Positions 33 through 60,070 of a DNA stretch of 64,000 nucleotides are shown piece after piece. This stretch comes from Octopus sinensis (taxonomy: Eukaryota), in NCBI RefSeq assembly GCF_006345805.1, contig NW_021833300.1, positions 11,624 to 75,623 on the forward strand. The letters are read 5' to 3'. How positions within the stretch are numbered: position 1 is the stretch's first letter; each line of letters begins with the position of its first letter. Under the pieces are notes generated by a model. It was not told the origin of the DNA, made no database searches, and was given only the letters and a program-made list of their open reading frames with translations. Position numbers and translations under genes: made by a program.

Positions 33-79
<47 letters not shown>

Positions 80-273
80 GTATTATGTATGTGCGCATGT
101 ATGTAAGAATATGCAGTTTCTGGAATAATATATATTCTACTTGAAAATCACTGAGATGACCATGGCTTCGTAATTTATTTCTAGGTCTGGAAAAAATTAA
201 TGAAAAAACTGTTAGAAATTAATGAAGTTAATTCTAAATTTCCCGATGATCATCACACGCACACATGCACCAC

Positions 274-352
<79 letters not shown>

Positions 353-780
353 TCTCCTAATAAAAAGCAAAGTTTGTTACTAAGTTGACCGCTGAAAACA
401 CTAAGTAAAATTGATAATATTTCAGATTTTTGTATCATTGAAATTAATTTGACCATTCCGCAAATAACTGTGCACCTGTTTTCCGAAAATGGAAAGGCAG
501 GAGTGCGGCGAGTTGGTGATGTATCAGATACGATTTCTAGCAATCCACGTACTGTCTCTGTCTTTTCTCACCGTAATGCAGTTTAGACATTGAAAAAATA
601 TTCAACCTATCACTGAATCCATGGATAGGTTTATCAGATTTATCAAAATTTATCTCAGCCATAAAGAAATTAAAACATATTTCACTGTCACACAGATGTC
701 GCGTTTCTTTTGAGGTTCAGTGTATAGCAACACAAACCAACTCTTCATAATCACACCCCAGAGAGCAGGGAAAACAGGTA

Positions 781-833
781 TCAGCACCGTTTCTCCGTAA
801 ATTTCCCGAAGAAGGATTCCTTGCTCTGAAATA
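781..833 (-). CDS. Paralogue A exon 5 ([17 protein letters not shown])
   Basis: Acceptor tactcttctctag|TATTTCAG, phase 1, TGA at 783-781. Lacks 8 nt present in paralogue B, so the frame differs from B. Confidence 0.5.
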
Positions 834-3800
834 CTAGAGAAGAGTATAAACCACTGACTTGTATTATTAATATTTTGTTACAACTTGCATTGTTTTGGCT
901 TTAAAGAAAAACTATTTAAAAGATTTATATGTATGAGACAATGCTTCTTGAAAACCAGACCTGTGCGTGCATTCACACACACATGCACACACACACACAC
1001 ACATGCATGCATGCATTCGCGTACGCCAACACAGAGTTATACAATCAATTACACTGAAAACAAGAGAAGATGTTTTACTTACTACCGAAGTATTTGTAAG
1101 AAATATCGTACTCTTCCTTATTTCCACTTTCTCTTTTGGCTTCTATCCTCCTGTTGTCATTCGCAATGGTAAAGTTCGGGTAACTGAAACTAATATATTA
1201 CAATTGATAAATTGTTTTTCTTATATTTTTGTTATTTTCTATGTTTACATGTTTTTTTAATGTAATCCAACACAAAATCAATTTGACCCTCATCGATCTT
1301 TTTGTCAAACCTTAAGGTTCATAACGAAAACATTATCATTATTATAAGGCAAACAGGCAGAATCTTTAGCATGCCGGAAAAAATGCTTAGCAGTATTTTG
1401 TCCGTCTATACATCATGATTTCAAATTCCGCCGAGGTCAATTTTGCCTATCACTATTTCAGGGATCGTTGAAATTATTACCAGTTTGACACTGGTACCGA
1501 TGCAATCTACCCCCCCCCCCAGCACCCAACAAGCTGTCAGACGTTCTGCCTACGGGAGAAAGGATTATTATTATGGAATTATAATATTATACAACAATGA
1601 GATATAAAGTATATCGGTTAACTTTCCTCTAATATATACACCGTGAAAGTGTTTAAAAGAACAATTATTAAATAATTAAAGATGTTAATTATGAGTAAGG
1701 AGATGATATATACTTCGCATTGAAAGTCAACACTTGTGGATCCCACGAAAACGGCTTTGCAAGGATTTTATCTTTCTGGAACCATGATGTAGAATTGGTC
1801 CCTGTTCCATTGAAAACGAATGCAAAATAATCCAAACTTGATTTCACCCGAAATTCCACCTGCAAATGGAAAGTAAACTCAAACAAGTGACAAATCTCAG
1901 AGAATGAGGAATGGCAGAATTGTAGGAAGAGAAAGGAGACTAGGATATGATATATGGAGAGAGTAGGAGGGCGAGAATGAGATGGACAGAATTGCGGGGA
2001 AAGTGTGACACTTTGAGTGCAGAAGAAAAAAGACTAAAGAAGACAATGAGTTGTGGGAAGAGGATAAGAGGAGGAGAGAGATAGAATGTGAGAATGACAG
2101 AGAGACAGACAGACAGAAGGAGGGAAAATGAGAAGACGAGATGCTATGTCGCGTTAGAAGTGCAAAATTAAGACAGAAATTGATTGGGTTTGAGAGGAAA
2201 ACGTGGCTGACTTACGAGACAGAGAATCAGACTACTAACTAATGAGTCATGATTTCGGAGTCTTTCTAAAGGTTTTGTTGCATCTATAGGAACTAGAAAA
2301 CCCTGACAAAATCAGGACAAAACAAAGACAAAAACAGCAAGAATCGATCCCACATCAAAGACATATCGATGTTCTGTGGAGGAATCAAGAGAGATATCAG
2401 GAACGGAAGTAAAGGAGTTGTGACGTCACCTCAAGAAAGGGGCTTTTGATCTGCCTCTTCCTTGGTCAAGACTCTTAGGTGGAGCGGATGCCAGAGGGAC
2501 GGTAGCTTCTGACCAAATGCTGGGTTAGTGTAGGTGTGTAGGTGTGTCCAACAAGTTCTTTTGACCCTGGTAGAGTTTAGCTTTTCTGAAGTTCGTCTCG
2601 AATTAAAAGCATTTTTACTGTCCCATCTACATATTCGTGAGTTTCATCCTTCCACCTCTCCCTTTTAAAATGCAAGAAAAACGTTTTTCCTCGCTGACAC
2701 AGAACCTTCTCATAATCTCTCCCCGTCTTTCTCCACCTCATGTCTACTCAACCCTATATTCTTACACTTATAACCACTCACCATTCTTATTTCAATCTTA
2801 GCAGTAAAAATTCTTTGCTATTCTACTTCAAAATATTTATTCCTCATCGATCCAATTCAGGTGTTAATTCATCGCTTTCCAAACTCCTCCTTAAATCCCC
2901 TTTTCTTCTTAATTATAATGCTCATAATGCCTTTTAACCTCCGCGCTCTTCTTACACCAAAGCACCGATGACGGGATTGAACCATTCCACATTCTGATCC
3001 ATTTGTACCAGTCTCTTTCGTAACCTAGAAGTATTCCTCGTCAACACACTGATTCAATATCCAGACACTCTCGGTTATGTTGCTGTCTATGAAATCCCGC
3101 GTCTCTACGATCTGATGACGTTTGTCATATTATGCTATCGTTCCTTGAAGGATGAAAGGCAAAGCCGACCTCGGCGCAAATTGAACTCGGAAAATAAAGA
3201 TCCGGAATTAAATACCACGAGCATTGTGTTCTACGCTCTAATTATTCTGATTCTTTTATAATAATCATAATAATAATAATAAAAATAATAATGAGAAGAA
3301 GAAGAAGAAGAAGAAGAAGAAGAAGAAGAAGAAGAAGAAGAAGAAAATTGGAAGAAGAAGAAGAAGAAGAAGAAGAAAGAAGAAGAAGAAGAAGAAGAAG
3401 AAGAAGAAGAAGAAGAAGAAAAAGAAGTGGAAGAAGAGGAGAGGATCTCTGTGGAACAGGATGACTGCCTGCAACAAGGTCGCGCCCCTGCTTGGATGAC
3501 AAGCGAGCGAACGCTGTTAATGCGTCAAGGACCCCTTGAAAGGATCTTGCAAACATCAGGTAAGTAACAATCTATTACCTAAAGAACAGAAAGGCTGCAG
3601 GAACCAAAGTAGGGCAACAAAAGATCACCTATTAGATGATAAAATGATAATTAGAAATCGCAGAGGTGGATGATTGGCAGGAGTGAATGTAGCATGGTTA
3701 GATTATAAAAAAGCGTATGACATGGTAGCACACAGTTAGATAAGTGAAACAAGGAGCAGGTTTGAAATAGCAACAAAAAAAAGCATGGAGAAAATGCTAA

Positions 3801-6800
3801 ATGAAAGTATGGAACATTGGAATACTGAAATGATCGGAGAAAAACAAAAACCCGGAAAAGTGAACATCAGACGTGGAATATTTCAAGGTGATAGCTTATC
3901 TCCGTAACTATTCGAATTGGCCATGAAAAGGGAAAATTGCTTACGATTTGGTTAAAGGAAATGGTCAGATAAATCATCTCCTTTTCATGGACGATACAAA
4001 AGTTTATGCGATAAATGAGAAACAGTTTGAAAATCTTGTGAATATTATCCGCATTTTCTCAAATAACGTTGCTATGGAATTTGGGATAGAAAAGTGCGCT
4101 ATATTGAAAATAAAAGGAGGAACATTTGAAAGAAGCGAGGGAATTGAAATGCCAAATGGGCAAAGAATGGGAGCAGTTGAGAAAGGACGGTGGTAAAAGT
4201 AGTTGGGAATACTGAAAGCAGACGAAATAAAAATGAATGAAACAAACGACCAATTGGGAGTACACAAGGAGAGTAAGAAAATCATTGCAGTCAAAGCTGA
4301 ATTCCAAAACCCTTATTAAAGCAAAGATCAGTGTCATTAATCAGATACCCGACGAAAATGATGAAAATCTAAATAAAAGGCCGGACCTTAGTCCCCAAAT
4401 CTCGCTAGTGAAACAGAAAAAAAAAGGAGAAATAAATACGAGAGGAATAGGTTTCTATGCGTCGTGTATATTTTATAGCAACACTCTTGCCACAAAATGA
4501 AAACGCTGCACAATATTCCATTGAAATTTAGAAGGAAAATTAGTCTGGATCTAGTTCTATCGTGAAACCCCGCCAAAGAAACTTGCTAACATAAAAAGAT
4601 AGATTTTAAAAATGAAACAAACATCAGAAACTGAAATTAAACATTTAAAAGAAAACACTAGTAATTATTGTAAAACAACAACAAATATGTAGATTGGTTA
4701 TTAAATGAGAATCATCTTGAAATTCTAAAAATTCATTACCTTTTCAATAGGCAAATTGTCCCAGTACAAATAAATAGGGCTTTTCTTAAGTGAGGTTTTG
4801 GTCATCTCAAATACTTTCTGCCGGTTTTTACCTGAATCATCAAAAACAAATTTAAGTATACAAAAAAGATGTTAACCCTTGAACGGCGGGAAAGGGTTGC
4901 AGGAATGTCTGTGACAAACGGACAATAATCGAAAAAATCTCTTTTATATTTATTTTCATTAAATTAAGCACAAAAACTAAAATAATTGTTGGTCTTAAAC
5001 AAATGGAGAAGAATCGGTGCACCTTTTCCATCCAGAGCTAGTTGAAGCATTAGTCTCTTCCGTATTATCTAAAACATCGTTTTCAACATCATCTGCTTCA
5101 TTTGATGATGAAATAAAATCAGAAAAACACTTCTTCATCGCTGTTTAAATCATCTATTTACGACTGGATTTCTCCCATTGATAAGGACCGCTTACGCTTA
5201 GGCGCATTTAATTTAGCAGTCGCTCCAGCCTCAACTGATGATGGTCATATCTGTGTAAACGTTTTGTGACACCAATAGGATCTTACAGAAAAAGGAGGTG
5301 CATTCCAGAAATTTCCAGGATTTTTCAGGAAAGACATTTATTTATTTCAAAGAAAGCTCAGTGAGCCGGTCCGATTCCTCGTTCCACATCTTGCTCAGGA
5401 TTGTGTTTGGTGGAAAGCACACTTCTAAGGCATGTAAAGTGATTAACTCATTCCAGTGGTGTGCCCGAAATTATGATGTTAAAGTGCAGAAGGGCAGAAT
5501 TCGGTATTGATTAGGCGAAGAACTGAGATTTCTTAGAATTTACAGTGAGCTCAAAACGTTGATACGCATTGGTGAAAAAATTGACAGCTTTTTGCTGTTC
5601 TAAGTTTGAGTGACTGCGTGACCACGTTGCCATCGACGAAGTGAAGTTCTGAGATTCGCTTGGAACTGGTAAGATTCTTTGACCGAAACCTCACCAGGGT
5701 GAAGAGTCTTTCATCAAAACGATATCTGATGTCCTTTCCCAGCTGATCCGAGGGAAGTTCATAGATCATTGCAGCAAGGTATAGGGAGAAAAGCATAGTA
5801 GCGGGTACGCAAACTTGTTTCAATCCAGATGTAATTGGGAATTCTTCTGAGGGTCCATCACGAGGAAGGAAACGCCCAGTCATACCATTGTATGATCAGG
5901 GAGAAGAAATAATCAAGGGCCGTCCATATGGCTGGTCTTGGTACTCTATCAAAACATTTTGCAGATCATAAAAGATAAGGAAAATTCGGTTTTGTTGTTC
6001 TCGATACTTGCTTTCGAATTGTCTGGCGCAGATCGTGTCTATGGTTCCAAGTAATATTCGGAAAACACACTGGGACTCTGGAAGGATTCTTTCTGCGATG
6101 ACGTGGAGACCATTCAAGGGTATTGAAGATCTATCCTAAAATAATAAGTAGCGAGATTACACGATGGTTTCCATAAGATTTTCTATCTCCTTTCTTGAAT
6201 ATACTTATTATTAGAGCACTAAGTGCGTGAGGTCGGCAATGTCTCGTGTATGAGTCTACGTATGAGTATAGCTTCCTTAATTCTTAAATTACCCACATTT
6301 CTTTCACTGACTCAATTGTGACTGTTATGCTTTTGTCGGTGTTCCGGCATCTTTTCTGAAGGAGGAGGCTATCGTGTTAAGATGTTCTTTGATGCGGATG
6401 TGTAACGGTTTTGTTGTGCTACCCACATAGAACTTGTTGCATTTGTTACATCGTATTCTATTCACAGCATTTACCCGTTGGCATAAATCTATGTCACGGA
6501 TGGGACAGTTTGTTAGCTTGCATTGATTGTTGTCCCTTGTTCGTTTCTTTGCGAGCATATATACATAAAACATACAAATCTGCGCATAGATAAATTCATA
6601 CATAACATACATACAAACTTACAAACAAAAATACCCTGTTGTTGATGTTGCAATTCCAGTGAAGGAGCCTGGATTTAGGTTAGAAACCGGTTCGTTCTCT
6701 ATTGGCAGGAAATCCTGAAATAAACTGAATAATAATAATATACATACATACATACATACATACATACATACATACATACATACATACATACATCAATGTC

Positions 6801-6805
6801 TGTGT

Positions 6806-6846
<41 letters not shown>

Positions 6847-7259
6847 AGTGTGTGTGTACGTGCGTTTGTAGAACAATTGGGAATACAGAAATTAGAAAAA
6901 ATATGCCAGAAAATTGTGATTTACATACTGTTTCCGGAGAGTAAAATATACGATAAACACGTGCAATCCTGATCTTTAATTTCTTTGTTGTAAAGCGATC
7001 GATGCATATAACACGGGCCATTACAATAGCTAAAATATTGGCACTCATCGCGGGAAATACACAGACTCGCACATTCCAAACGAGATGACGCGGTTTTTGT
7101 ACTTTTATTCTGATCTGTTAAGCATCTTGATGTTGTGGTTTCTTCGAAGAGACCCTCTCTATTCGTTGGTTCTCCGGAAGTTACAAGAGTCACGAAAAGC
7201 AAAAGTGTCAAAGCTGGCAGCAGAAGAGGCGTCGAATGGTACTGAATTGTTGTCTCCAT
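781..7259 (-). CDS. Paralogue A: spliced gene (5 coding exons, ~240 aa) for a predicted secreted PAN/Apple-like domain protein
   Basis: Exons 7259-6929, 4831-4740, 1859-1714, 1183-1083, 833-781. All introns are GT..AG and phases 1,0,2,1 join without stops. N-terminal hydrophobic signal peptide and ECASLC-x5-C-x5-C-x3-C pattern. Last exon least certain. Confidence 0.78.
1083..1183 (-). CDS. Paralogue A exon 4 ([33 protein letters not shown])
   Basis: tttcag| acceptor and |GTAAGT donor, 101 nt. Only the phase-2 frame required by exon 3 is open; the other two frames have stops in both paralogues. Confidence 0.7.
1345..1500 (+). mobile_element. Decayed tRNA-derived SINE (family 2; mirror at ~45790-45965 minus)
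   Basis: cagaatctttagcatgccgg..aaatgcttagc..ttcaaattccgccgaggtc..ttttgcct matches the better preserved copies at 52600-53100. Confidence 0.75.
1714..1859 (-). CDS. Paralogue A exon 3 ([48 protein letters not shown])
   Basis: ttccatttgcag|GTG acceptor, AA|gtatat donor, 146 nt, phase 0 in and phase 2 out. Lies inside ORF 1689..1886-. Confidence 0.8.
3295..3440. repeat. (GAA)n polypurine tract in intron 2
   Basis: Direct reading. The mirror tract at ~43310-43980 is much longer. Confidence 0.95.
3470..4330 (+). mobile_element. Decayed non-LTR retrotransposon RT fragment, R4/Dong-like (mirror ~42410-43290 minus)
   Basis: Translations with stops: [77 protein letters not shown]. Confidence 0.8.
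4740..4831 (-). CDS. Paralogue A exon 2 ([30 protein letters not shown])
   Basis: gattcag|GT acceptor, AAG|gtaatg donor, 92 nt, phase 1 in and phase 0 out. Not in the ORF track. Confidence 0.8.
4872..5150 (-). mobile_element. piggyBac-like transposon end remnant (mirror ~41590-41888)
   Basis: TTAA followed by CCCTTGAACGGCGGG (piggyBac-type terminus) and a nearby acidic frame [25 protein letters not shown]. The second TIR was not found. Confidence 0.45.
5200..6120 (-). mobile_element. Decayed RTE-clade LINE RT fragment (mirror ~40575-41545 plus)
   Basis: [82 protein letters not shown]; frameshifted. Confidence 0.85.
6200..6570 (-). mobile_element. Penelope-like GIY-YIG endonuclease fragment (mirror ~40180-40540 plus)
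   Basis: [44 protein letters not shown] and downstream [12 protein letters not shown]. Confidence 0.8.
6929..7259 (-). CDS. Paralogue A first coding exon: signal peptide + PAN/Apple-like domain
   Basis: ORF 6921..7259- [64 protein letters not shown]. Acceptor ttttcag|GA ATG upstream, phase-1 donor AACA|GTATGT. Confidence 0.88.
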
Positions 7260-7287
7260 TCCTGAAAAATATACAAGTATACATACT

Positions 7288-7321
<34 letters not shown>

Positions 7322-11056: not shown

Positions 11057-11509
11057 CCCCTCATAAGGTTTTTTTCCATTTTGGGGAATTTTAAAATAAT
11101 TTTGGCGAATTTATATTCTATACACGGGAATTAATCCGATGAAATAAAAACGAAAGAAAATATATTTTGGTGCACGATTTAAGGCCTGATTAGCTGTTAT
11201 TTTTATCAACTTTAACCACCACCTCATATGTCATGTTTCAAAGCGTTCAAGAATAACCATCTTGAATACGCTGAGAAATACGAAAAAAGATTGAGTCAAT
11301 GAATGAGGAAAGAATTGTAGACAGGGATGTGGATTTAAATCATTAAAGGAATGAAAAGGTCTTTCATAAGTTTAGAAGAAATTGTAAAAACAGAGAAAGT
11401 GAAAGTGAAAGCAAGAGAAACATCCGTTTGGAGATTTAAGGTGAAATGAACAGACTCAGTCGCTTGAGACCTTTCTGAGAGAAATCAGAAAAGTCTTTCT
11501 TTTACTCTT

Positions 11510-11930
11510 TTACTCCTTTACTTGTTACAGTCATTTGACTGCGGCCATGCTGGAGCACCGCCTATAGCCGAGGAAATCGACCTCAGGACTAATTCTTTGC
11601 AAACCTAGTACTTATTCTATCGGTCTGTTTTGCTGAACCGCTAAGTTACGGGGAAATAAACACACCAGCATCGGTTGTCAAGCGATGTTGGGAGGACAAA
11701 CACAGACACACAATACACACACACACACACACACACACACAACATATATATATATACATATATCCGAAGGGATTTTTGAGTTTCCTTCTACCAAATCCAC
11801 TCACAAGGCTTTAGTCGGCCCGAGGCTGTAGCAGAAGACACCTGCCCAAGGTGTCACGCAGTGGGATTGAACCCGGAACCATGAGGTTGGTAAGCAAGCT
11901 ACTTACCACACAGCCACTCCAACGCCTATA
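11510..11930 (-). mobile_element. Full-length tRNA-derived SINE (family 1; mirror 28015-28437 plus)
   Basis: Head taggcg..ggagtggctgtgtggtaagtagcttgc..ggttccgggttcaatccc (A/B-box-like), internal (TA)/(TG) tract, tail gcatggccgcagtcaaatgactg..agtaaaagagtaaaagag. Confidence 0.9.
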
Positions 11931-19816: not shown

Positions 19817-20529
19817 TAAACGTCGGTCCTTCCAGTTCAAAATCCACATAGAGGTTTTGGGTCTTTGATCAACCCATGGCTGCAGAGGAGGCTCTTTCGC
19901 AAGGTGACATACTTTGAGGCCGAACCCGGATCCACGTAATTAGGAAATAACACACAGACCCACCTACCCCTATATATATATACGCATAAATACACACACA
20001 CATGTACACACACGCATACGCACACAACAGCTCGCTAATCCTTATCCTAAGACTTATTACCCTATTTTCATATCTATTCCTTTTTTTAAAATCTGTCTAT
20101 CTGCATTAAATCCTAAATCACAGCAAAATTCGAAATCAGAACGTTAAGTTTCAAGACAGAGTAGAAAAGATAGTTGATCAGTCGATCCATGATTTCTACA
20201 AATCCATCTCCGTCCTTTCCATTCTCATCGGAAGTGGAACATGAAAATGGTAAACCGAGTGTAATAAAAGCACAAGTCAGCTACAGTATTTTATATCATA
20301 GAATTATAAAAACAATTTCAGTAATTATCGTTCTTATCAGTATATTATCAGTTTTACCCGTAGCTTTGTTAGGTTATCAACAGCAACTGTTTCTATCCAT
20401 CGATCTTAGCAAATAAACGCTTGGAAGAAGTCGATTGCGTTTGGATGCATGGTGAACGAAACGATTTCATTTTTTATCTTGGAAATATATCGATAGCTTT
20501 AAATTTTTAATTATGCACTAGATAAATTA

Positions 20530-23500
20530 TACTTAATGCCCTCGAGACAAAAATCCCTCCCTTGGAGAGAACAAAAAGATAAAGAAAAAGAAAAATATAA
20601 AAGAAGGAAGAAAAGCGCACTAACCACTCCTGAAAGACGATATGCGTATGTGGTGAGCGGTAACCCAACAAATGGCCAGCTTCACCCAGATGTGAGAAGG
20701 GCAGCAGCTGAACAGCAATCTTTTTTGTGCATGGCACAAAAAAGTGTTCAGCAGCTGATCTGGCTACAAGCACAAAGCTGGAACTACCACCACATAAGGC
20801 CACCACCAACAGATGCAGGATGGCCACCACAGACACCAACACCAACACACACACCACAAAAATATGTCTACTGAACGTAGGAGGGCTGCTGCGCGGCAAC
20901 TGTAAAAGGAAAATCTCATTCCTGAGAGACCTTGTGACATGCAATCAAGCTATATGCATGGCACTCACAGAAACGCATCTTGGACACGATATAGGGGATG
21001 CAGAAATACACATGCCGCAATATGCAGTCTTACGCTCAGATAGAAAAGGGGGGAGCCATGGTGGAGTTGCAGTGTACATCCGAGATGACCTCACGCCCAG
21101 GTCCTGTTGTCATATTCAAACACAGTGTGTAACACTCAAATTGTACATATAAGACAACTGAATATCGTCATATGTACTACGTATCGCCCACCAGATGCCC
21201 CAAATCACTCAGGCATGTTTGAAGACTGCCTAACAAAAATAGGATGACTTTAACTTCCCCAATGTGGAATGGCCTGGGGGGGGGCAGATGCTCTCAGGGA
21301 TGACACACCATCAGCAGGCACAGGCAGAGTCCCTGCTCCATCTGACAAATGCCTCTTTCATGGAGCAAATAGTTCTGCAACCAACAAGGGCAGATAATAT
21401 ACTGGATCTCTGCTTCACAAACAATATGGATATTATCCATAGTGTTAAAGTGATGCCGACAATGATCTCGGATCACAACATAATAGAGCTATCTATGTTT
21501 GGACCAAAAGCTCCCGTAGACACACAGCCTATACGAAGCATCCACCATCTCTCCAACTTAAACTTTCATAAAGTAAACTGGAAGTTGATTGAGAAATAGA
21601 TCCTCAAACAGGATTGGCCTAAATGTCTCTCCACACCGGACATTAACATGAAACACAAACACTTCATGTCCATAATACAAGCCATATGTGACAAATATAT
21701 CCCAGTGTGCTGGGCCAGCACACACAAAAACAAAAACAGGATCCCTAGAGAAAGGAAGATTCTTATGAGACGACGGACAAGGATTGCGAACCGCCTGAGC
21801 AAGCACACCAAAAGTGGTGAGAAGTCTCGGCTCGAGAGAATGCTAATGGAAATTGAGGAAAGTCTGCATCAGTCCCATGGAAAGGAGAGAGCAGATAAAG
21901 AAGCTTGGGTAATAGAAAATATAAAATCAAACCCTAAAGCTATCTTTATGTTTGCCAAAGAGACAGCTACAGTGCACCAGAGAATAGGACCTCTTTTCCA
22001 AAAAGATGTCTCTCTCACAAGAAATCCCACGAGGATAAGTGAAATACTGAAAGAACGATTCCAAAGTGTGTTCACTACACCTCTAGGACACAGGCAAGTA
22101 AACAACCCAGAAGAATTCTTTGCCACTTTACCTGCGGCCAAAGAGGCAAACATTGAGTACATCAACATTGAAGATGATGATATCACACTAGCCATAGATG
22201 AGATTAACACAGACTCAGCTGCTGGACCTGATGGATTTCCAGCGATTCTTCTCAAATCGTGCAAACGAGCCCTTGCGAAACCGCTACAGCTTCTTTTTCA
22301 GAGATTTCTTGCAAGTGGTAAGCTCCCAGTCAAATTGAAAGAGGGGGTAATATGCCCTATCCATAAGGGAGGTAGCAGAGCAGATGCTAAAAATTATAGG
22401 CCTATCTCTCTGACCTCACACATCAGCAAAGTCATGGAACGAATAGTCCGCAAGAAACTAATCATGTTCCTTGAAGAAAATGACTTGCTGTCTGACACCC
22501 AGCATGGATTTCGACCAAGTAGAAGCTGCCTAACACAGCTCCTGCAACACTATGACTGGGTGTTAAAACAGCTACTAAATGGCTCAAATGTGGATGTAAT
22601 ATATCTCGACTTTGCAAAAGCCTTTGATAAAGTCGACCATGGTATGATCTGTCACAAGCTGCGTGTTCTCGGCATAGGCGGAAAACTTGGAGAGTGGCTG
22701 CACAACTTCCTAAAAGACAGAAGACAGGCAGTTGTGAGCAATGGAGCCACCTCCAAGGAAACACAAATAAAAAGCGGTGTTCCACAGGGCACTGTCTTGG
22801 GGCCACTGCTGTTAATAGTGGCTCTTTCAGACATGCCTTCAGTTGCTACGATGGCCACCCTTGCTAGCTATGCAGATGACACAAAAGTCTCCCACACAAT
22901 ACAAAACCCTGAAAATATTGCGCATCTGCAACAGGAGTTGGATACAATATACAGGTAGGTGGCCTGAGGACAACAACATGCAGTTTAATGCAGGTAAGTT
23001 CCAGGCCCTGCGCTACCGGCACACAAAGGTAAACGACGTGTAGACTGGATACACTGGCCCAAGAAGAATTGCAATCCCTGAGTCAAAATCAGTGCGTGAC
23101 CTGGGCATTGACATAATAAATGATGCATCTTTCCAAGTGCATATTACTAATCTGGTGATAAAATGCAGACGGCTAGCTGGATGGTTTCTCCGAACTTTCA
23201 GAACAAGAGAGAAGGAGACACTGGTGGTCCCCTGGAAAACATTCGTCCCCAGCCGCTTGGACTACTGCTCCCAACTTTGGTCACCACACAATATAAAACT
23301 AACAGCAGAATTCGAAGCAGTTCAGAGAAGCTACACAAAGAAGATCGTCTCAATGCAAAATATCAGCTATTGGGAAAGACTGAAAGTATTAAATATCTTC
23401 TCCCTAGAGCGGAGGCGGGAGTGATATGCGGTGATATACATCTGGAAAATCCTGGAGGGTCTTGTCCCAAACTTTGGCATTCAAAGTTACCCCAACCGCA

Positions 23501-25912: not shown

Positions 25913-28900
25913 TGTATGTATGTATGTATGTATGTATGTATGTATGTATGCATGCATATATGTATATATGCATGTATGTATGTATGTATGTATGTATGTA
26001 TGTATGTATGTATGTATGTGTTTGTGTACGTATGTGTATGTTTGCATGTATGTATGTATGTATGTATGTATGTATGTATGAATGTATGTATGTATGTATG
26101 TATGTATATGTATATATGTATGTATGTATGTATGAATGTCACTATTCAGTTTTATTTCAAGATCTCTTGCCTATAGAGAAAGAGCCGGTTTCTAACCTTG
26201 ATTCAAGACTCCTTCATTGGAATTTCAACATCAGGGTATTATTTTATGTATATGTGTAGATTTGTATGTTTTACTTTATGTATGTCTTCTAATGCATATA
26301 GTTGCATATGTAGACATGTTTATATATATATATTTAAATGAGAAACTTCTGGAAAGTTTTACAGATTTTTTAAATTTCTCAAGTTTGGTAACTAGGCAAC
26401 GTTTACTTTAAATCGAAATACAATCCAAAGCATGGCTTCATTTCAATAAGATTTGGATTCTCGTCCTGTACTCGTTGACCACAGTTTTTTTCGATGGCAT
26501 TAAGTGTAATTTGTCTAGTGCATAATGAAAAATTTAAAGCTATCGATATATTGCCAAGTTAAAATAAAATCGTTTCTCTCACCATGCAAACAAACGCAGT
26601 CAACATGTTTCAAGCGGTTTATTTGCTAAGATCGATGGATAGAAACAGTTGCTGTTGATAACCTAACAAAGCTACGGGTAAAACTGATAATTTACTTACC
26701 TTCTGAAGAGCAAAGCATTCCGGAGAGAAAGAGAAACGAATATAAGACCTGGAATTTAAGAACTTATTTAACGAAAAGTGAAATTACCTGGCGACGACTT
26801 CTGGAGTAAGAGGGAAAGAAAGTTCAAGTTGGCCATCAATTTTTATAAGAGTGGAATAACTCGGGAGAGATTGTTTTAAAGACATTGTCTTTTCGAAGCC
26901 AATGCAAAAAGAAATCAACTGTGAAATATCCTGAATTTATTCTTACATTATCAGAACGAAGAGAATAGGAATAAATAAAAGAAAGCTTGTTTATCGAGAC
27001 TAGGAAAAGGGAACATTAAAAGGCAGAAGCTTATTGTTTGCAGTGGGACACGTCTTGTTGGTCGGTTTTACAACTAAAAGTGAAGTTTACTTAACAACCC
27101 TGTAACAGTCATGAACCTTAAAGGTAAGTGAATTAATAATATTAAGAATGAAAAGAGAGATAATTACTGAAATTGTTTTTATAATTCTATGATATAAAAT
27201 ACTGTAGCTGACTTGTGCTTTTATTACACTCGGTTTACCATTTTCATTTTCCACTTCCGATGAGAATGGAAAGGACGGAGATGGATTTGTAGAAATCATG
27301 GATCGACTGATCAACTATCCTTTCTACTCTGTCTTGAAACTTAACGTTCTGATTTCGAATTTTGCTGTGATTTAGGATTTAATGTAGATAGACAGATTTA
27401 AAATAAAGAAATAGATATGAAAATAGGGTAATAATTCTTAGGATAGTGATTAGCGATCTGTTGAATATTAAAATAAATAACACTGGGCAAATTTTTTCTT
27501 GTCTGGTGCCTGGAAAATTTCAATGAATTCCAAGTGATTTTGCCTGCTAAATTCAAAACTTACTCCAGTTTTTCCTTATCAGGTCTGGTTTTCTGACTAG
27601 ACCTGATATAGTAAGTATTTTAGTCATACAAGAGGCATATAATATAAATTAATAAAAGAGAGATTATTACTGAAATTAATTTTATAATTCTATAATATAG
27701 AATACTGTAATTGACTTGCGCTTTAGTACACTCGGCTTACTATTATAATTTCTCATTTCCAAAAAGAATGGAAAGGACATGGATGGATTTGTAGAAATCA
27801 TGAATCGACTGATAAAATATCTTTAGTATTCAGCCATGAAATTTTACATTTTGACTTCGAATCCCACTGGGATTTAGGATTTAATTTGTATAGATTTCAA
27901 ATAAATGAATTGAAATATAAATAGAGTAATGGTTCCTAGGGCAATAATTAAGGTACTGTTGAATAACAAATATAACTTTAGGTATTTCATTTAATAAAAA
28001 TAATTATTAAACAATTATAGGCGTAGGAGTGGCTGTGTGGTAAGTAGCTTGCTTACCAAACTCATGGTTCCGGGTTCAATCCCACTGCGTGACACCTTGG
28101 GCAAGTGTCTTCTACTATGGTCTCTGGCCGCCTAAAGCCTTGTGAGTGGATTTGGTAGACGGAAACTGAAAGAAGCCCGTCGTATATATGTATATATATA
28201 TATGTCTGTGTGTGTGTGTGTTTGTGTGTCTGTGTTTGTCCTCCCAACATCGGTTGACAACCGATGCTGGTGTGTTTACGCCCCCGTAACTTAGCGGTTC
28301 GGCAAAAGAGACCGATAGAATAAGTACTAAGCTTACAAAGAATTAGTCCTGGGGTCGATTTCCTCGGCTATAGGCGGTGCTCCAGCATGGCCGCAGTCAA
28401 ATGAGTGAAACAAGTAAAAGAGTAAAAGAGTAAAAGAAAGACTTTTCTGATTTCTCTCAGAAAGGTCTCAAGCGACTTAGTCTGTTCATTTCACCTTAAA
28501 TCTCCAAACGGATGTTTCTCTTGCTTTCACTTTCACTTTCTCTCTTTTTACAATTTCTTCTAAACTTATGAAAGACCTTTTCATTCCTTTGATGATTTAA
28601 ATCCACATCCCTGTCTACAATTCTTTCCTCATTCATTGACTAAATTCTTTTTTCGTATTTCACAACGTATTCAACAGGGTTATTCTTGAACGCTTTAAAA
28701 CATATGACATATGAGGTGGTGGTTAAAGTTGATAAAAATAACAGCTAATCAGGCCTTAAATCGTGCACCAAAATATATTTTCTTTCGTTTTTATTTCATC
28801 GGCTGAATTCCCGTGTATAGAATATAAATTCGCCAAAATTATTTTAAAATTCCCCAAGATGAAAAAAACTTATGAGGGGTTATATATATATATATATATA

Positions 28901-35470: not shown

Positions 35471-35484
35471 CGTAATATATATAT

Positions 35485-39470: not shown

Positions 39471-39524
39471 GATATATGTATTTATGTATGTATGTAAGTA
39501 TGTATACTTGTATATTTTTCAGGA

Positions 39525-39855
39525 ATGGAGACAACAATCCAGTACCATTCGATTCTTCTTCTTCTGCCAGCTTTGACACTTTTGCTTTTCGTGACTCTTG
39601 TAACTGCCGGAGAACCAACGAATAGAGAGGGTCTCTTCGAACAAACCACAACATCAAGATGCTTAACAGATCAGAATAAAACTACAAAAACCGCGTCATC
39701 TCGTTTGGAATGTGCGAGTCTGTGTCTTTCCCACGATGAGTGCCAATATTTTAGCTATTGTAATGGCCCGTGTTATATGCATCGATCGCTTTACAACAAA
39801 GAAATTAAAGATCAGGATTGCACGTGTTTATCGTATATTTTACTTTCCGGAAACA
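39525..39855 (+). CDS. Paralogue B first coding exon: signal peptide + PAN/Apple-like domain
   Basis: ORF 39525..39863+; acceptor ttttcag|GA at 39522/39523; donor A|GTATGT at 39856. Confidence 0.9.
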
Positions 39856-42800
39856 GTATGTAAATCACAATTTTCTGGCATATTTTTTTCTAATTTCTGT
39901 ACTATATTTTCATCATTACCCAATTGTTTTACAAATGAACCCCCTCCACACACATACACACACACTCACACACAAACAAACATACACACACATGTATGTA
40001 TGTATATCATTATTCAGTTTATTTCAGGATTTCCTGCCAATAGAGAACGAACCGGTTTCTAACCTAAATCCAGGCTCCTTCACTGGAATTGCAACATCAA
40101 CAACAGGGTATTTTTGTTTGTAAGTTTGTATGTATGTTATGTATGTATGTATCTATGCGCAGATTTGCATGTTTTATGTATGTATGCTCGCAAAGAAACG
40201 AACAAGCGACAACAATCAATGCAAACTAACAAACTGTCCCATCCGTGACATAGATTTATGCCAACGGGTAAATGTTATGTATAGAATACAATGTAACAAA
40301 CGCAACAAGTTCTATGTGGGTAGCACAACAAAACCGTTACACGTTCGCATCAAAGAACATCTTAACACGATAGCCCCCTCCTTCAGAAAGGATGCCGGAA
40401 CACCGACAAGAGCATAACAGTCACAAATGAGCCAGTGAAAGAAATGTGGGTAATTTAAGAATTAAGGAAGCTATACTCATACGTAGACTCATACACGAGA
40501 CATGGCCGACCTCACGCACTTAGTGCTCTCATAATCACTATATTCAAGAAATGAGAAAATCTTATGGAAACCATCGTGTAAACTCGCTACTTACTAATTT
40601 AGGAAAGATCTTTGCTCCAATACACTTGAACGGTCCCCACACCATCACAGAAAGAATCCTTCCAGAATCCCAGTGTGTTTTCCGAGCATTACTTGGAACC
40701 ATAGACACGATCTGCGCCAGACTATTCCAAAGCAAGTATCGAGAACAACAAAACCGAATTTTCCTTATCTTTTATGATCTGCAAAATGCTTTTGATAGAG
40801 TACCAAGACCAGCCATATGGACGGCCCTTGATTATTTCTTCTCCCTGATCATACGATGGTATGACTGGGCGTTTCCTTCCTCGTGATGGACTCTCAGAAG
40901 AATTCCCAATTACATCTGGATTGAAACAGGTTTGCGTACCCGCTACTATGCTTTTCTCCTTATACCTTGCTGCAATGATCCATGAACTTCCCTCGGATCA
41001 GCTGGGAAAGGACATCAGATATCGTTTTGATGAAAGACACTTCACCCTGGTGAGGTTTCGGTCAAAGAATCTTACCAGCTCCAAGCGAATCTCAGAACTT
41101 CACTTCCTCGATGGCAACGTGGTCATTCGGTCACTCAAACTTAGAACCGCAAAAAGCTGTCAGTTATTTAACCATTGCGTATCAACGTTTTGAGCTCACT
41201 GTAAATTCTAAGAAATCTCAGTTCTTCGCCTAATCAATCCCGAATTCTGCCCTTCTGCACTTTAACATCATAATTTCGGACACACCACTGGAACAAGTTA
41301 ATCACTTTACATGCCTTAGAAGTGTGCTTTCCACCAAACACAATCCTGAGCAAGATGTGGAACGAGGAATCGGACCGGCTCACTCAGCTTTCTTTGAAAT
41401 AAATAAATGTCTTTCCTGAAAAATCCTGGAAACTTCTGGAATGCACCTCCTTTTTCTTTAAAATCCTAGTGGTGTCACAAAAAGTTTACACAGATATGAC
41501 CGTCATCAGTTGAGGCCCGATCGTCTGCTAAATTAAATGCGCCTAAGCGTAAGCGGCCCTTATCAATGGGAGAAATCAAGTCGTAAATAGATGATTTAAA
41601 CAGCGATGAAGAAGTGTTTTTCTGATTTTCTTTCATCATCAATTGAAGCAGATGATGTTGAAAATGATGTTTTAGATAATACAGAAAAAAATAATGCTTC
41701 AACTAGCTCTGGATGGAAAAAGTGCACCGATTCTTCTCCATTTGTTTAAGACCAACAATTATTTTAGTTTTTGTGCTTAATTTAATGAAAATGAATATAA
41801 AAATTTGCTTTATGAAAAAAGATTTTTTCGATTATTGTCTGTTTGTCACACACATTCATGCAACACTTTCCCGCCGTTTAAGGGTTAACATCTTGTGTGT
41901 ATACTTACATTTTTTATTGCTGATTCAGGTAAAAGCTGGCAGAAAGTATTTGAGATGACCAAAAACTCATTTAAGAAAAGCCCTATTTATTTTTACTGGG
42001 ACAATTTGCCTATTGAAAAGGTAATGAATTTTTAGAATTTCAAGATGTTTCTCATTAAATAACCAATCTACATATTTGTTGCTGTTGTACAATAATTACT
42101 AGTGTTTTCTTTTAAATGTTTAATTTCAGTTTCTGATGTTTGTTTCATTTTTAAAATCTTTCTTTGGCGGGGTTTCACGATAGAATTAGATCCAGACTAA
42201 TTTTCCTTCTAAATTTCAATGGAATATTGTGCAGCGTTTTCATTTTGTGGCAAGAGTGTTGCTATAAAATATGCACGACGCAGAGAAACCTATTCCTCTC
42301 GTATTTATTTCTCCTTTTTTTTCTGTTTCACTAGCGAGACTTGGGGACTAAGGTCCGGCCTTTTATTTAGATTTTCATCATTTTCGCCGGGTATCTGATT
42401 AAGGACACTGATCTTTGCTTTAATAAGGGTTTTGGAATTCAGCTTTGACTGCAATGATTTTCTTACTCTCCTTGTGTACTCCCAATTGGTCGTTTGTTTC
42501 ATTCATTTTTTATTTCGTCTGCTTTCAGTATTCCCAACTACTTTTACCACCGTCCTTTCTCAACTGCTCCCATTCTTTGCCCATTTGGCATTTCAATTCC
42601 CTCGCTTCTTTCAAATGTTCCTCCTTTTATTTTCAATATAGCGCACTTTTCTATCTCAAATTCCATAGCAACGTTATTTGAGAAAATGCGGATAATATTT
42701 ACAAGATTTTCAAACTGTTTCTCATTTTTCGCATAAACTTTTGTATCGTCCATGAAAAGGAGATGATTTATCTGACCATTTCCTTTAACCAAATCGTAAG

Positions 42801-45800
42801 CAATGTTCACTTTTCATGGCCAATTCGAATAGTAACGGAGATAAGCTATCACCTTGAAATATTCCACGTCTGATGTTCACTTTTCCGGGTTTTTGTTTTT
42901 CTCCGATCATTTCAGTATTCCAATGTTCCATACTTTCATTTAGCATTTTCTCCATGCTTTTTTTTTTTGTTGCTATTTCAAAACTGCTCCTTGTTTTACT
43001 TATCTAACTGTGTGCTACCATGTCATACGCTTTTTTCTAATCTAACCATGCTACATTCACTCCTGCCAATCATCTACCTCTGCAATTTCTAATTATCATT
43101 TTATCATCTAATAGGTGATCTTTTGTTGCCCTACTTTGGTTCCTGCATCCTTTCTGTTCTTTAGGTAATAGATTGTTACTTACCTGATGTTTGCAAGTTC
43201 CCTTTCAAGGGGTCCTTGGCGCATTAACAGTGTTCGCTCGCTGGTCATCCAAGCAGGGGTGCGACCTTGCTGCTGAAGACAGTCATCCTGTTGCACAGCA
43301 AACCTCTCTCTTCTTCTTCTTCTTCTTCTTCTTCTTCTTTCTTGTCTTCTCTTCTTTCTTTTCTTCTTTTCTGCTTCTTCTTGTCTTCTTCTTCTCTTCT
43401 TTCTTCTTCTTCTTCTTCTTTCTTCTCTTCTTCTTCGTCTTCGCCTTCTTCTTCTTCTTCTTCTTCTTCTTCTCTTCTCTTCCTTTCTTGCTCTTCAATC
43501 CGGCTTCTTTCGTTCTCTTCTTCTTTCTACATCTCTTATAATCTTCTTTTCATCTTCTTATTTCTTCTTCTTCTTCTTCTTCTTCTTTTTCTTCTTCTGT
43601 CTCTTTTCTATGTCTTTATTCTTCTTCTCTTTCTCTCTTCTTTCTCTTCTTCCTATCTTCTTCTTTCTTCTTATTCTTGCTTCTTTAATTCTTCTTCTTC
43701 TTCTTCTTCTTCTCTTCTTCTTCTTCTTTTCTAATTCTTCTTAATCGTCTTCTTCTTCTTCTTCTTCTTCTTCTCTAATTATTCTTCTATTTTAATCATT
43801 TTTCTCTCTTCTTCTTCTTCTTCTTCTTTTTCTTCTATTCTTTCTTCTTCTTCTCTTTTCTTCTCTTCTTCTTCTAATTCTTCTTCTATTCTTCTTCTTC
43901 TTCTTCCTTCTTCTTTCTCTTCTTCTTCTCTTCTTTTTCTTCTTCTTCTTCTTCTTCTTCTTTTTCTTTCTTTTCTTCTTATTAGTTATATATTGTTATT
44001 ATTGTATTATTATTATTATTATTATTAGTAGTAGTAGTAGTATAGTAGTAGTAGTAGTAGTAGTAGTATTTTTATTGTTATTATTATTATTATTATTATT
44101 ATAAAAGAATCAGAAGAATTAGAGCATAGAACACAATGCTCGTGGTATTTAATTCCGGATCTTTATTTTCCGAGTTCAATTTGCGCCGAGGTCGGCTTTG
44201 CCTTTCATCCTTCAAGGAACGATAGCATAATGTGACAAACGTCATCAGATCGTAGAGACGCGGGATTTCATAGACAGCAACATAACCGAGAGTGTCTGGA
44301 TATTGAATCAGTGTGTTGACGAGGAATACTTCTAGGTTACGAAAGAGACTGGTACAAATGGATCAGAATGTGGAATGGTTCAATCCCGTCATCGGTGCTT
44401 TGGTGTAAGAAGAGCGCGAAGGTTAAAAGGCATTATGAGCATTATAACTAAGAAGAAAAGGGGATTTAAGGAGGAGTTTGGAAGGCGATGAATTAACACC
44501 TGAATTGGATCGATGAGGAATAAATATTTTGAAGTAGAATAGCAAAGAATTTTTACTGCTAAGATTGAAATAAGAATGGTGAGTGGTTATAAGTGTAGGA
44601 ATATAGGGTTGAGTAGACATGAGATGGAGAAAGATGGAGAGAGATTATGAGAAGGTTCTGTGTCAGCGAGGAAAAACGTTTGTCTTGCATTTTAAAAGGG
44701 AGAGGTGGAAGGATGAAATTCACGAATATGTAGATGGGACAGTAAAAATGCTTTTAATTCGAGACGAACTTCAGAAAAGCTAAACTCTACCAGGGTCAAA
44801 AGAACTTGTTGGACACACCTACACGCGTACCCCAGCATTTGGTCAGAAGCTACCGTCCCTCTGGTATCCGTTTCACCTAAGAGTCTTGACCAAGGAAGAG
44901 GCAGATCAAAAGCCCCTTTCTTCCGTTCCTGATATCACTCTTCATTCCTCCACAGAACATCGATATGTCTTTGATGTGGGATCGATTGTTGCTGGTTTCG
45001 GCTATTCTTTTATCCTGATTTTGTCAGGGTTTTCTAGTTCCTATAGATGCAACAAAACCTTTAGAAAGACTCCGAAATCATGACTCATTAGTTAGTAGTC
45101 TGATTCTCTGTCTCGTAAGTCAGCCACATTTTCCTCTCAAACCCAATCACTTTCTGTCTTAATTTTGCACTTCTAACGCGACATAGCATCTCGTTTTCTC
45201 ATTTTCCTTCCTTCTGTCTGTCTGTATCTCTCTCTCTCTCCTCCTCTTCCTCCTATGTCTTGTCTTCTCTACTCTTTTTCTCCTGCACTCAATGTCTCAC
45301 TCTTCCCCCACCACTGTTCTCTCCATCTCATTCTCGCCCTCCTACTCTCTCCTTATATCACATCCTAGTCTCCTTTCTCTTCCTACAACTCTGCCATCCC
45401 TCATTCTCTGAGATTTGTCACTTGTTTGAGTTTACTTTCCATTTGCAGGTGGAATTTCGGTTGAAAAAAGAAGCTAGTTCTTATGCATTCGTTTTCAATG
45501 GAACAGGGACCAATTCTACATCGTGGTTCCAGAAAGATAAACTCCTTGCAAAGCCGTTTAAGTGGGATCCACACACTGTGACTTTCAATGCGAAGTATAT
45601 ATCATCTCCTTACTCATAATTAACATCTTTAATTACTTAATAATTGTTCTTTTGAACACTTTCACGGTGTATATATAAGAAGAAAGTTCACAGATATACT
45701 TTATGTCTTATTGTTGTATAATATTATAATTCCATAATAATAATCCTTTCTCCCGTAGGCAGAAAGTCTGACAGTTTGTTGGGGCGGGCGGGGGGGGGTT

Positions 45801-46618
45801 AGTCGATGGCATCGATACCAGTGTCAAACTAGTAATCATTCCAACGACCCCCGAAAGGGTGATAGGCACAGTCGACCTCAGCGGAATATGAACTCAGGAT
45901 GTATAGACGGACAAAATACTGCTAAGCATTTTATCCGGCATGCTAAAGATTCTGCCAACTCGCTGCCTTATAATAATGATAATGATAATGTTTTCGTTAT
46001 GAACCTTAAGGTTTGACAAAAAGATCGATGAGGCTCAAATTGATTTTGTGTTGGATTACATTAAAAAAAAACATGTAAACAGAAAATAACAAAAATATAA
46101 GAAAAACAATTTATCAATTGTAATATATTAGTTTCAGTTACCCGAACTTTACCATTGCGTATGACAGCAGGAGGGTAGAAGTCAAAAGAAAAAGTGGAAA
46201 TAAGGAAGAGTACGATATTTCTTACAAATACTTCAGTAGTAAGTAAAACATTGCCTCTTGATTTCAGTGTAATTGATTGTATAACACTGTGTTGGCGTAC
46301 GCGAATGCATGCATGCATGTGTGTGTGTGTGTGTGTGTGTGCATGTGTGTGTGAATGCGCGCACAGGTCTGGGTTTCAAGAAGCATTGACTCATACATAT
46401 AAATCTTTTAAATAGTTTTTCTTTAAAGCCAAAACAATGCAAGTTGTAACAAAATATTAATAATACAAGTCAGTGGTTTTTACTCTTCTCTAGTATTTCA
46501 GTATTTCGGAGCAAGGAATCCTTCTTCGGGAAATTTACGGAGAAACGGTGCTGATAACTGTTTTCCCTGCTCTCTGGGGTGTGATTATGAAGAGTTGGTT
46601 TCTGTTGCTATACACTGA
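39525..46618 (+). CDS. Paralogue B: spliced gene (5 coding exons, ~264 aa) for a predicted secreted PAN/Apple-like domain protein
   Basis: Exons 39525-39855, 41929-42020, 45449-45594, 46138-46238, 46494-46618. GT..AG introns with phases 1,0,2,1 and an uninterrupted frame. Signal peptide, 8 Cys in exon 1, N-glycosylation sequons NKT, NGT, NST, NFT. Confidence 0.82.
41929..42020 (+). CDS. Paralogue B exon 2 ([30 protein letters not shown])
   Basis: ttttattgctgattcag|GT..AAG|gtaatg, 92 nt, phase 1 in and phase 0 out. Confidence 0.82.
43310..43980. repeat. Expanded, degenerate (TTC)n polypyrimidine tract
   Basis: Direct reading; homologous to the ~145-bp tract at 3295-3440. Confidence 0.95.
45449..45594 (+). 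CDS. Paralogue B exon 3 ([48 protein letters not shown])
   Basis: ttccatttgcag|GTG..GCGAA|gtatat, 146 nt, inside ORF 45260..45619+. Confidence 0.82.
46138..46238 (+). CDS. Paralogue B exon 4 ([33 protein letters not shown])
   Basis: tttcag|T..AGTA|GTAAGT, 101 nt; the only open frame matches the phase-2 junction. Confidence 0.72.
46494..46618 (+). CDS. Paralogue B exon 5 ([41 protein letters not shown])
   Basis: First AG after the pyrimidine tract, ttttactcttctctag|TA, phase 1, TGA at 46616-46618. An alternative AG 8 nt downstream would give the short A-type end. Confidence 0.5.
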
Positions 46619-46729
46619 ACCTCAAAAGAAACACGACATGTGTATGACTGTGAAATATGTTTTAATTTCTTTATGGCTGAGATGAATTTTGATAAATCTG
46701 ATAAAGTCATACTCTTGGATGCATTTTGA

Positions 46730-48961: not shown

Positions 48962-49231
48962 GTTTGTATGTATGTATGTATGTATGTATGTATGAATGTA
49001 TGTATGTATGTATGTATGTCTGTATGCATGTGTGTGTATGTATATATATGTATATATATATGGTGGGGCGTGTTTGCGTGTGTGCGATGATTATCGGCAA
49101 ATTTCGAGTTAATTTCATTAAATTCTAACAATTTTTTCATTATTTTTTTTCCAGATGTATATATTTACGAAGCCATAGTCATCTCAGTGATTTTGAAGTA
49201 GAATATATATTATTCCAGAAACTGCATATTC

Positions 49232-53780: not shown

Positions 53781-53794
53781 CGTAAAGAATTTTT

Positions 53795-59843: not shown

Positions 59844-59906
<63 letters not shown>

Positions 59907-60070
59907 CGACGGGCTTCTTTCAGTTTCCGTCAACCAAATCAACTCACAAGGATTTGGCCAAACCGAGGCTATAGTAGAAGTCACTTGCCCAAGGTGCCAC
60001 GCAGTGGGAATGAACCTGGAACCTTGTGGTTGGTAAGCAAGCTACTTACCACACAGCCACTCCTGCACCT
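59425..60070 (-). mobile_element. SINE family 1 full copy plus an extra head
   Basis: Tail at ~59425-59640 and heads at ~59670-59840 and ~59900-60070, separated by (TC)n(TA)n. Confidence 0.88.

Follow-up and report, generated by a model that had tools for sequence, protein, structure and literature searches.

The locus described here shares features with several known protein families. It lies in a 64,000-nucleotide stretch of Octopus sinensis DNA (RefSeq assembly GCF_006345805.1, contig NW_021833300.1, positions 11,624 to 75,623 of the forward strand; hereafter, the window) and consists of two paralogous genes, A and B, whose third exon (positions 1714–1859 of the window, minus strand, in A) differs between the copies mainly by amino acid replacements. 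The closest described proteins are those of the PAN/Apple type, among them plasma prekallikrein, factor XI, and the apicomplexan micronemal lectins Sarcocystis SML-2, Eimeria MIC5, and Toxoplasma MIC4. A and B resemble these in their Cys-rich N-terminal module, its eight cysteines, and a tentative local match of its predicted fold (template-modeling (TM) score by target 0.54–0.55), but they have one PAN module, not a tandem series, and neither a protease nor a growth-factor part. Instead, the module is fused to a beta domain that has no Pfam or PDB relative, and it is in this domain that evolution is fast, whereas the PAN exon has an omega (the ratio dN/dS of replacement to silent divergence) of 0.6.

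In the manner of their divergence, A and B are comparable to other systems. The peptide-binding exons of class I and II genes of the major histocompatibility complex also exceed introns in divergence, are patchworks produced by short-tract exchange, and have replacements at particular positions. However, A and B are paralogues and not alleles, have an unrelated fold and only putative binding, and the silent sites of exon 3 are as diverged as the replacement sites. Snake-venom PLA2 isozymes and conotoxins are likewise small secreted proteins of tandem, lineage-specific families, with mature exons that change faster than introns and dN at or above dS. In contrast to those families, the signal-peptide/PAN exon of A and B is ordinary, not ultra-conserved, their mosaicism is clear, and they are known here from genes alone. 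Snail FREPs, sea-urchin Sp185/333, and amphioxus VCBPs are expanded, clustered, secreted families whose hypervariable segments change by both point mutation and exchange between copies, although they are built from other domains; a recognition role for the octopus family would be by analogy with them.

Clustered replacement divergence between A and B had been noticed in a sequence-only reading of the window, and our analysis confirms it. In our judgment it is on balance probable that the two genes are young members, both intact, of a gene family specific to the octopus lineage, in which loops have been replaced through exchange between paralogues together with selection for amino acid novelty. 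For the exon borders we relied on homology with octopus proteins already annotated. A search with the exon peptide, and then one with the family alignment, recovered ~20 octopus proteins annotated as “uncharacterized” or “Apple domain-containing”, and mapping the family proteins back onto the window gave five coding exons per arm, all bounded by canonical splice sites. Exons 1–4 are those of the sequence-only reading, whose numbering we keep; the short last exon had been overlooked. The features of the two genes are as follows.

6929..7261, minus strand: A, signal peptide and PAN/Apple-like exon (exon 1); ATG at 7259–7257, coding 6929–7259
4740..4831, minus strand: A, exon 2 (31 residues)
1714..1859, minus strand: A, exon 3, a complete exon with AG acceptor and GT donor; 22 of 146 bases differ from B
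1821..1847, minus strand: A, patch 1 of exon 3 (VKSSLDYF and a flanking codon); naive empirical Bayes posterior >0.9 at alignment columns 149, 150, and 154; predicted tip of the first beta hairpin
1725..1751, minus strand: A, patch 2 of exon 3 (FSWDPQVLT); naive empirical Bayes posterior >0.9 at columns 181, 185, and 186; predicted loop between strands 3 and 4
1083..1189, minus strand: A, exon 4
137..186, minus strand: A, last coding exon (LEINYEAMVISVIFK, then stop)
27111..27123, plus strand: B, coding part of the first exon (ATGAACCTTAAAG, then GTAAGT), the sole such exon in the window
39523..39855, plus strand: B, signal peptide and PAN/Apple-like exon; coding 39525–39855
41929..42020, plus strand: B, exon 2
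45449..45594, plus strand: B, exon 3, partner of the A exon; patch 1 at 45461–45487, patch 2 at 45557–45583
46132..46238, plus strand: B, exon 4
49155..49201, plus strand: B, last coding exon (VYIYEAIVISVILK, then stop)

The reading frames of A (241 codons) and B (240 codons) are free of stops and frameshifts, and every intron is of the GT-AG type. Each gene encodes a hydrophobic signal peptide, the Cys-rich PAN/Apple-like module, and then an all-beta domain of ~130 residues; exon 3 encodes the start of the hypervariable part of this C-terminal domain. A protein database search found neither A nor B among annotated proteins. For comparison we added four O. sinensis relatives, namely L001 (on an unplaced contig), g2 and g3 (in tandem at L002, chromosome CM016885.1), and P12 (at L003), a more distant paralogue. 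All four have intact open reading frames (ORFs) of 239–241 codons, and their splice sites are the same as those of A and B. Below, “six copies” refers to A, B, L001, g2, g3, and P12, and “five close copies” to these without P12.

With the homology-set borders, the counts of replaced and silent codons given earlier for the A–B comparison were reproduced exactly: 7 and 3 in exon 1, 5 and 0 in exon 2, 12 and 1 in exon 3, and 6 and 0 in exon 4 (110, 31, 49, and 35 codons, respectively). The fifth exon contributes 4 replaced and 2 silent codons and a one-codon indel. The two patches that had been singled out in exon 3 (LKKEASSY in B vs VKSSLDYF in A, and KWDPHTV vs SWDPQVL) do hold multi-nucleotide swaps, with codons differing at two or three positions. 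The stretch between them, described as identical, is so in protein, but its DNA carries one silent change. The 22 differences among the 146 bases of exon 3 compare with 4.6–4.7% in ~6,000 aligned non-coding bases (binomial P = 1.5e-6), and their clustering is therefore far beyond chance. A count of 146-bp non-coding windows with at least 22 mismatches told us nothing, since it took in repeats that were misaligned. We also considered whether the patches arose by compensated frameshifts. On visual inspection, patch 2 could be read as an insertion, a substitution, and a deletion instead of five substitutions, and patch 1 gains nothing from gaps; neither case was decisive.

Proper counting of dN/dS for the pair gave values above 1 (1.37–1.91), in keeping with the sequence-only reading, although not significantly so for the pair as a whole (p = 0.13–0.24). 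By NG86, dN was 0.079 and dS 0.057 (omega 1.37; replacement differences 42.8/572, silent differences 8.2/148), and a Fisher test on these counts gave p = 0.24; omega was 1.63 by YN00 and 1.84–1.91 by maximum likelihood (ML). Divided by exon, omega was 0.60 for exon 1, 3.2 for exon 3 (p = 0.13), and 3.9 for exons 2–5 together (p = 0.017), the last being the only one of these pairwise omega tests to reach significance. The replacement divergence (pN) of A and B was 0.075 vs 0.046 in introns (p = 0.0024), and 0.171 in exon 3 (p = 1.6e-6), with fourfold sites elevated as well. When the changes were polarized with the other copies, 22 replacement and 2 silent changes fell on the A lineage and 17 and 5 on that of B. 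This divergence is not the decay of a single copy, since both lineages have accumulated replacements.

Site models were fitted with our own GY94-type likelihood program (M0, M1a, and M2a, with the F3x4 frequency model). As a control, 16 data sets were simulated under M1a, and the largest likelihood-ratio test (LRT) statistic for these was 5.7, with 0 of 16 above 5.99. For the real alignments, M2a was preferred over M1a with an LRT of 66–69 for the six copies (p about 1e-15) and 45.9 for the five close copies. The statistic was 56.4 with gap-adjacent columns removed, and 11.4 (six copies) or 18.9 (five copies) with all three hypervariable stretches masked. Once all columns containing gaps or codons that differ at two bases had been removed, the signal was weaker yet persisted (LRT 7.5, p = 0.024). 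In the six copies, with an M0 omega of 1.04, ~10% of codons belonged to a class with omega ~9 and 26% to one with omega ~0. Columns with a posterior above 0.9 were 149, 150, and 154 (patch 1), 181, 185, and 186 (patch 2), 205, and 226–232 (the exon 4/5 junction). Patch 1 differed in every family member inspected. Variable columns explained by a single hit comprised 29 replacement and 5 silent changes in the C-terminal domain, and 17 and 11 in exon 1. The diversifying selection suggested earlier is thus favored by the six paralogues, for which neutrality is rejected with the selected class falling on both patches, but not by the pairwise dN/dS, which does not significantly exceed 1.

The exons also stood out against their introns. 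Averaged over the ten pairs that the five close copies form, divergence was 0.063 in exon 1, 0.068 in exon 2, 0.174 in exon 3, 0.154 in exon 4, and 0.195 in exon 5, and 0.054, 0.043, 0.060, and 0.070 in introns 1–4, respectively. The C-terminal-domain exons (3–5) are consequently ~3 times as diverged as the introns that flank them. The comparison of exon dS with intron divergence proposed in the sequence-only reading gave a divided answer: replacement divergence is above that of the introns, but the silent sites of the exons (0.09–0.21) also exceed the introns (0.04–0.07).

The ancestry of the close copies is mosaic. In non-coding DNA all five are nearly equidistant (0.041–0.060), with no clear orthologous pairs, and L001 was for this reason dropped as an outgroup. 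All ten possible two-copy splits are present among the informative sites, and these are arranged in blocks: exon 1 and intron 1 join L001 to g3, exons 3–4 join g2 to g3, intron 4 joins L001 to g2, and sites joining A to B occur throughout. Of the nine sites that join B with L001, six (Poisson P about 2e-6) fall within ~230 bp, a stretch that starts in the 3′ half of exon 3 and takes in 114 bp at the beginning of intron 3. As these sites cluster at exon 3/intron 3, exchange between paralogues is real and touches the exon in question. Patchwork gene conversion, the second mechanism that had been proposed, is supported in that the close copies are mosaics and one exchanged tract spans the 3′ half of exon 3 and the start of intron 3, but not in that no donor was found for either patch. 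None of the four patch sequences had a match within 7/27 mismatches in the window or in L001–L003 (~190 kb in all), and none of ~40 family proteins carried the patch of either A or B.

The predicted structure places the variable segments in loops. AlphaFold2 on the family alignment gave a full-length member a mean predicted local distance difference test score (pLDDT) of 80 and a predicted TM score of 0.75, and the C-terminal domain alone a pLDDT of 78. That domain is predicted as nine beta strands. According to the DSSP strings, patch 1 spans the turn that joins strands 1 and 2 and patch 2 the loop leading into strand 4; column 205 belongs to the turn connecting strands 5 and 6, and columns 226–232 are grouped around the turn that follows strand 7. 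The variable segments thus follow strands 1, 3, 5, and 7, and conserved motifs occupy the alternate loops. Mapping the two patches on the model (pLDDT 78–80) therefore bears out their predicted position at a hairpin tip and in loops. If the strands form a simple meander, their order would bring the variable segments together at one end of the domain, possibly on one face. That these are ligand-contact loops holds as far as the predicted loops go, but contact with a ligand is a guess, as the C-terminal domain has no known relative.

The two halves of the protein gave different results in searches. Eight cysteines at residues ~46–100, the cysteine framework of the PAN module, are conserved in all six copies. 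A and B had no Pfam hit at all, and none to PAN (PAN_1, PF00024; PAN_4, PF14295; cut-off 21.4 bits) even at E ≤ 10. Sub-threshold hits to PAN_1 or PAN_4 were obtained for 7 of 18 close relatives (best E = 0.0017), remoter octopus relatives of the same architecture exceed the cut-off (P0048 at 29.4 bits, P0039 at 25 bits), and UniRef labels several family members “Apple domain-containing”. Local Foldseek matches of the N-terminal module were 1hky (probability 0.98, TM by target 0.54, root-mean-square deviation 2.9), 2j8j, which is factor XI apple 4 (TM by target 0.55), and the Sarcocystis lectin SML-2, with E-values of only 0.1–0.6. A sequence profile run against PDB matched in the PAN region only, and weakly (MIC4 at E = 0.03).

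For the C-terminal domain there was only noise in Pfam and no PDB sequence relative by profile, and Foldseek of the isolated domain against PDB found nothing better than E about 0.1 and TM 0.34. The domain holds an invariant 16-residue motif, and its core motif is conserved even when paralogues at a dS of about 0.45 are compared. When 1.8 billion representatives were searched with a profile built from family proteins, 122 hits were returned, among them ~35 from octopus, others from mussels, and a ZP-domain protein of amphioxus; the mussel and amphioxus relatives are remote and share the first half of the domain. Pfam DUF7922 was rejected as an identity for it. No octopus member matches, and the only matches, which are partial, are to P0030 and a relative from its cluster, P0135, both of them ZP-domain proteins of amphioxus. 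One of the two scores 22.9 bits (cut-off 25) and the other 32.1 for the whole protein with no single stretch passing. In P0030, the DUF7922 match overlaps the stretch hit by the family profile.

The reading that we prefer would operate as follows. The scaffold of the C-terminal domain, for example its invariant motif, would be held constant, while four short segments, namely the patch 1 hairpin tip, the patch 2 loop, the turn near column 205, and the exon 4/5 junction, would be replaced repeatedly. New variants would arise from point changes and from short-tract exchange among many paralogues. Diversifying selection would then keep amino acid novelty in these four segments, a probable binding surface, and it would be selection rather than mutation bias that keeps them different. 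Diversifying selection and gene conversion probably both contribute, inseparably so here, and neither is established for the A–B pair.

A number of our results weigh against this reading. For A and B, the ML likelihood-ratio test against omega = 1 gave 2.34 (p = 0.13), such that the omega of the pair is not significantly above 1, and the gene-wide M0 omega (0.94–1.26; LRT vs 1 ≤ 1.3) is not distinct from 1. When the three hypervariable stretches are masked, dN (0.042), dS (0.035), and intron divergence (0.048) between A and B are about equal. Fourfold sites, defined by conserved first and second positions, have divergences of 0.086 in exon 1, 0.100 in exons 2–5, and 0.21 in exon 3 (only ten sites), and over the ten pairs the mean dN of exon 3 is 0.205 vs a dS of 0.202. 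Because silent sites are elevated too, the excess of the exons is partly older or imported ancestry and not an acceleration specific to replacements. Recombination is demonstrably present among the copies put through the site models. Such tests are known to yield false positives when recombination or multi-nucleotide mutation occurs, as reported by Anisimova et al. 2003 and Venkat et al. 2018. No papers were found in searches of the literature for the family or for its locus names. Finally, A may be without a promoter, because a deletion has taken its first exon and upstream region:

20330..20345: deletion junction, A side; ~455 bp lost, with the counterpart on the B side at 26703–27157

This deletion removes the 5′ exon (MNLK) and ~400 bp upstream, both still present on the B side and at L002 of O. 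sinensis. It strengthens the alternative that A and B have drifted neutrally under relaxed constraint since their duplication, with A perhaps a promoter-less pseudogene and the patches single complex mutations fixed by chance. The clean loss in A, the absence of both genes from the annotated proteins, the near equality of dN, dS, and intron divergence outside the patches, and a gene-wide omega near 1 all agree with such drift. Survival of the ORF in A alone over so short a time is also not improbable (~0.15 by our estimate), and with its first exon lost, A may be a young, silent copy. Yet of the features expected of a pseudogene, only the loss of the first exon and upstream region is found, and in A only, the frame and splice sites being undisrupted in both genes. 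Full ORFs and every splice site are kept in all six copies, and for the five close copies the joint probability of this is low (the simulated probability of no premature stop is 0.02 at the divergence of the five-copy tree, and 0.21 at that of A and B). The 30 indel events counted over 6,625 bp of A–B non-coding DNA predict 3.3 in the coding sequence, where one is seen, in frame. B, with its promoter exon present, carries replacements comparable in number to those of A (17 vs 22). The omega ~0 class holds about 30–50% of codons, the core motif is conserved between distant paralogues, and the same segments are hypervariable across every family member. The replacement-to-silent ratios of 29:5 for the C-terminal domain and 17:11 for exon 1 are likewise not accounted for by drift. 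We therefore consider neutral drift unlikely as the explanation for the pair.

Mosaic ancestry alone would account for the divergence if older paralogues had donated the exon segments, or if introns had been homogenized and exons not, without any selection for novelty. The ten splits in blocks, the B–L001 tract across the 3′ half of exon 3 and into intron 3, and the elevated silent divergence of the exons speak for it. Patch 1 of A (SSLDYF) is loosely like the P0012 type (RSIDYV), and exon 1 of the L001 copy shows a block replacement of the same sort. Against it stand the failure to find a donor in the window and the three loci, or either patch in a listed family protein, and the tracts that it would need, at most ~25 bp long and ending exactly at the conserved flanks. 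Moreover, conversion without selection or a mismatch barrier should homogenize exons and introns alike, and replacements are still favored at the single-hit columns of the C-terminal domain. For these reasons we hold mosaic ancestry by itself to be distinctly unlikely, somewhat more so than drift.

It was also considered that a collapsed or chimeric assembly of repeats had created false differences between the copies. The region is indeed highly repetitive and palindromic, and the O. sinensis relatives include unplaced contigs. However, the frame and splice sites survive every difference in both copies, the differences over 7 kb resemble ordinary substitutions (~4.7%), and the hypervariable positions are the same in copies taken from an independent assembly, which together make such an artefact extremely improbable.

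Exchange between paralogues combined with selection for novelty remains the account that we prefer, and the family in which it would act appears to be an undescribed octopus expansion. What appears to be new is the family, together with its second domain, whereas phenomena of this kind are familiar. A small number of large lineage-specific expansions is a recognized feature of cephalopod genomes, and this family has at least 35 octopus members, but no description of it was found. If the diversification of the loops is adaptive, the family would be a candidate for a system of recognition in an animal that lacks adaptive immunity, and its beta domain a new scaffold with naturally variable loops. 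If A is silent, the pair would instead show the speed of drift in an orphaned copy. The locus is a compact natural case for the interplay of paralogue exchange and selection, with exons above introns in divergence and a visibly mosaic ancestry. A bolder proposal, which we regard as quite improbable, is that the C-terminal module is an unrecognized binding domain with four hypervariable loops at one end of a conserved beta scaffold, of which dozens of clustered copies reshuffled by micro-conversion would form a germline-encoded recognition repertoire (immune, chemotactile, or for gamete recognition) on a fold without a solved relative.

During these comparisons we noted further features of the family genes. 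The block-replaced patch in the PAN/Apple exon (exon 1) of the L001 copy is at ~7195–7245, where TKYTSFLTECSFRCIS stands in place of a different 16-residue sequence in the other copies. There, 16 bases differ within 39 (13 codons) with no frameshift, and the patch has a partial likeness to the distant paralogues P12 and P0014. The intron before exon 3 contains an open frame with a 24-residue start (45028–45115 in B, 2301–2214 in A). It may be an alternative terminal exon, since a similar peptide ends the O. sinensis model P0019. Approximately 100 bp here are identical between A and B, a run that by our estimate is not unusual at 4.7% divergence. A Cys-rich open frame in the last intron (46505–46620 in B, 826–720 in A) matches the C-terminus of the O. 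sinensis model P0008, and an 8-bp indel between A and B at its acceptor changes the frame that would be read. An ORF with the look of a signal peptide at 44965/2370 (MSLMWDR...) does not belong to the gene; in each copy it is either out of frame or interrupted by a stop. The O. sinensis gene model P0007 (LOC118768100) covers 42 kb (L002 10001–52450) and joins exon 1 of g2 to exons 2–3 of g3, with a whole paralogue skipped; it is either a chimeric prediction or the product of read-through splicing.

The gene pair is surrounded by octopus nuclear DNA that is AT-rich, with many microsatellites and retroelement debris, and the nearest database relatives of the window are O. sinensis sequences. Self-comparison of the window showed that A and B lie on an inverted segmental duplication, of which the best-aligned part is:

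77..7321: A arm, matching 49262–39463 in reverse orientation

Looser, rearranged homology of the arms runs inward to ~20.5 kb on the A side and ~26.4 kb on the B side. A and B are therefore head to head, in a palindrome-like, partly rearranged duplication (77–20551 vs 49262–26402) centered near 23.5 kb, in contrast to g2 and g3, which are in tandem and in direct orientation. The non-coding p-distance between the arms is 0.046–0.047 over ~6,000 well-aligned bases.

Repeats are frequent within and around the genes. The last intron of B contains a 38-bp minisatellite (46736–48444, ~45 copies, 93% matches) that is absent from A and present in the L001 copy. Fragments like reverse transcriptase, belonging to retroelements, were observed at 3600–4300, 42500–43300, 21359–23865, 33576–35475, and 60153–63114. 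One such fragment is within the intron before exon 3 in both A and B, and as the same intron carries it in both copies, the retroelement was inserted before the duplication. Another retroelement has three copies, with 94% identity between 21946–23865 and 35475–33576. The intron after exon 3 of both genes contains an element similar to short interspersed elements (SINE-like; not scanned for tRNA similarity) at 1360–1510 and 45760–45930, with further copies downstream of B (52612–53020). Beyond the genes, a 138-bp satellite forms an array at 54288–59177 (~35 copies, with higher-order periods of 276 and 414), and single units or related pieces of it are found at 11509–11647 and 28288–28426. Other SINE-like repeats, at 53794–54166, 59653–60111, and 63370–63877, adjoin sequence of this satellite.

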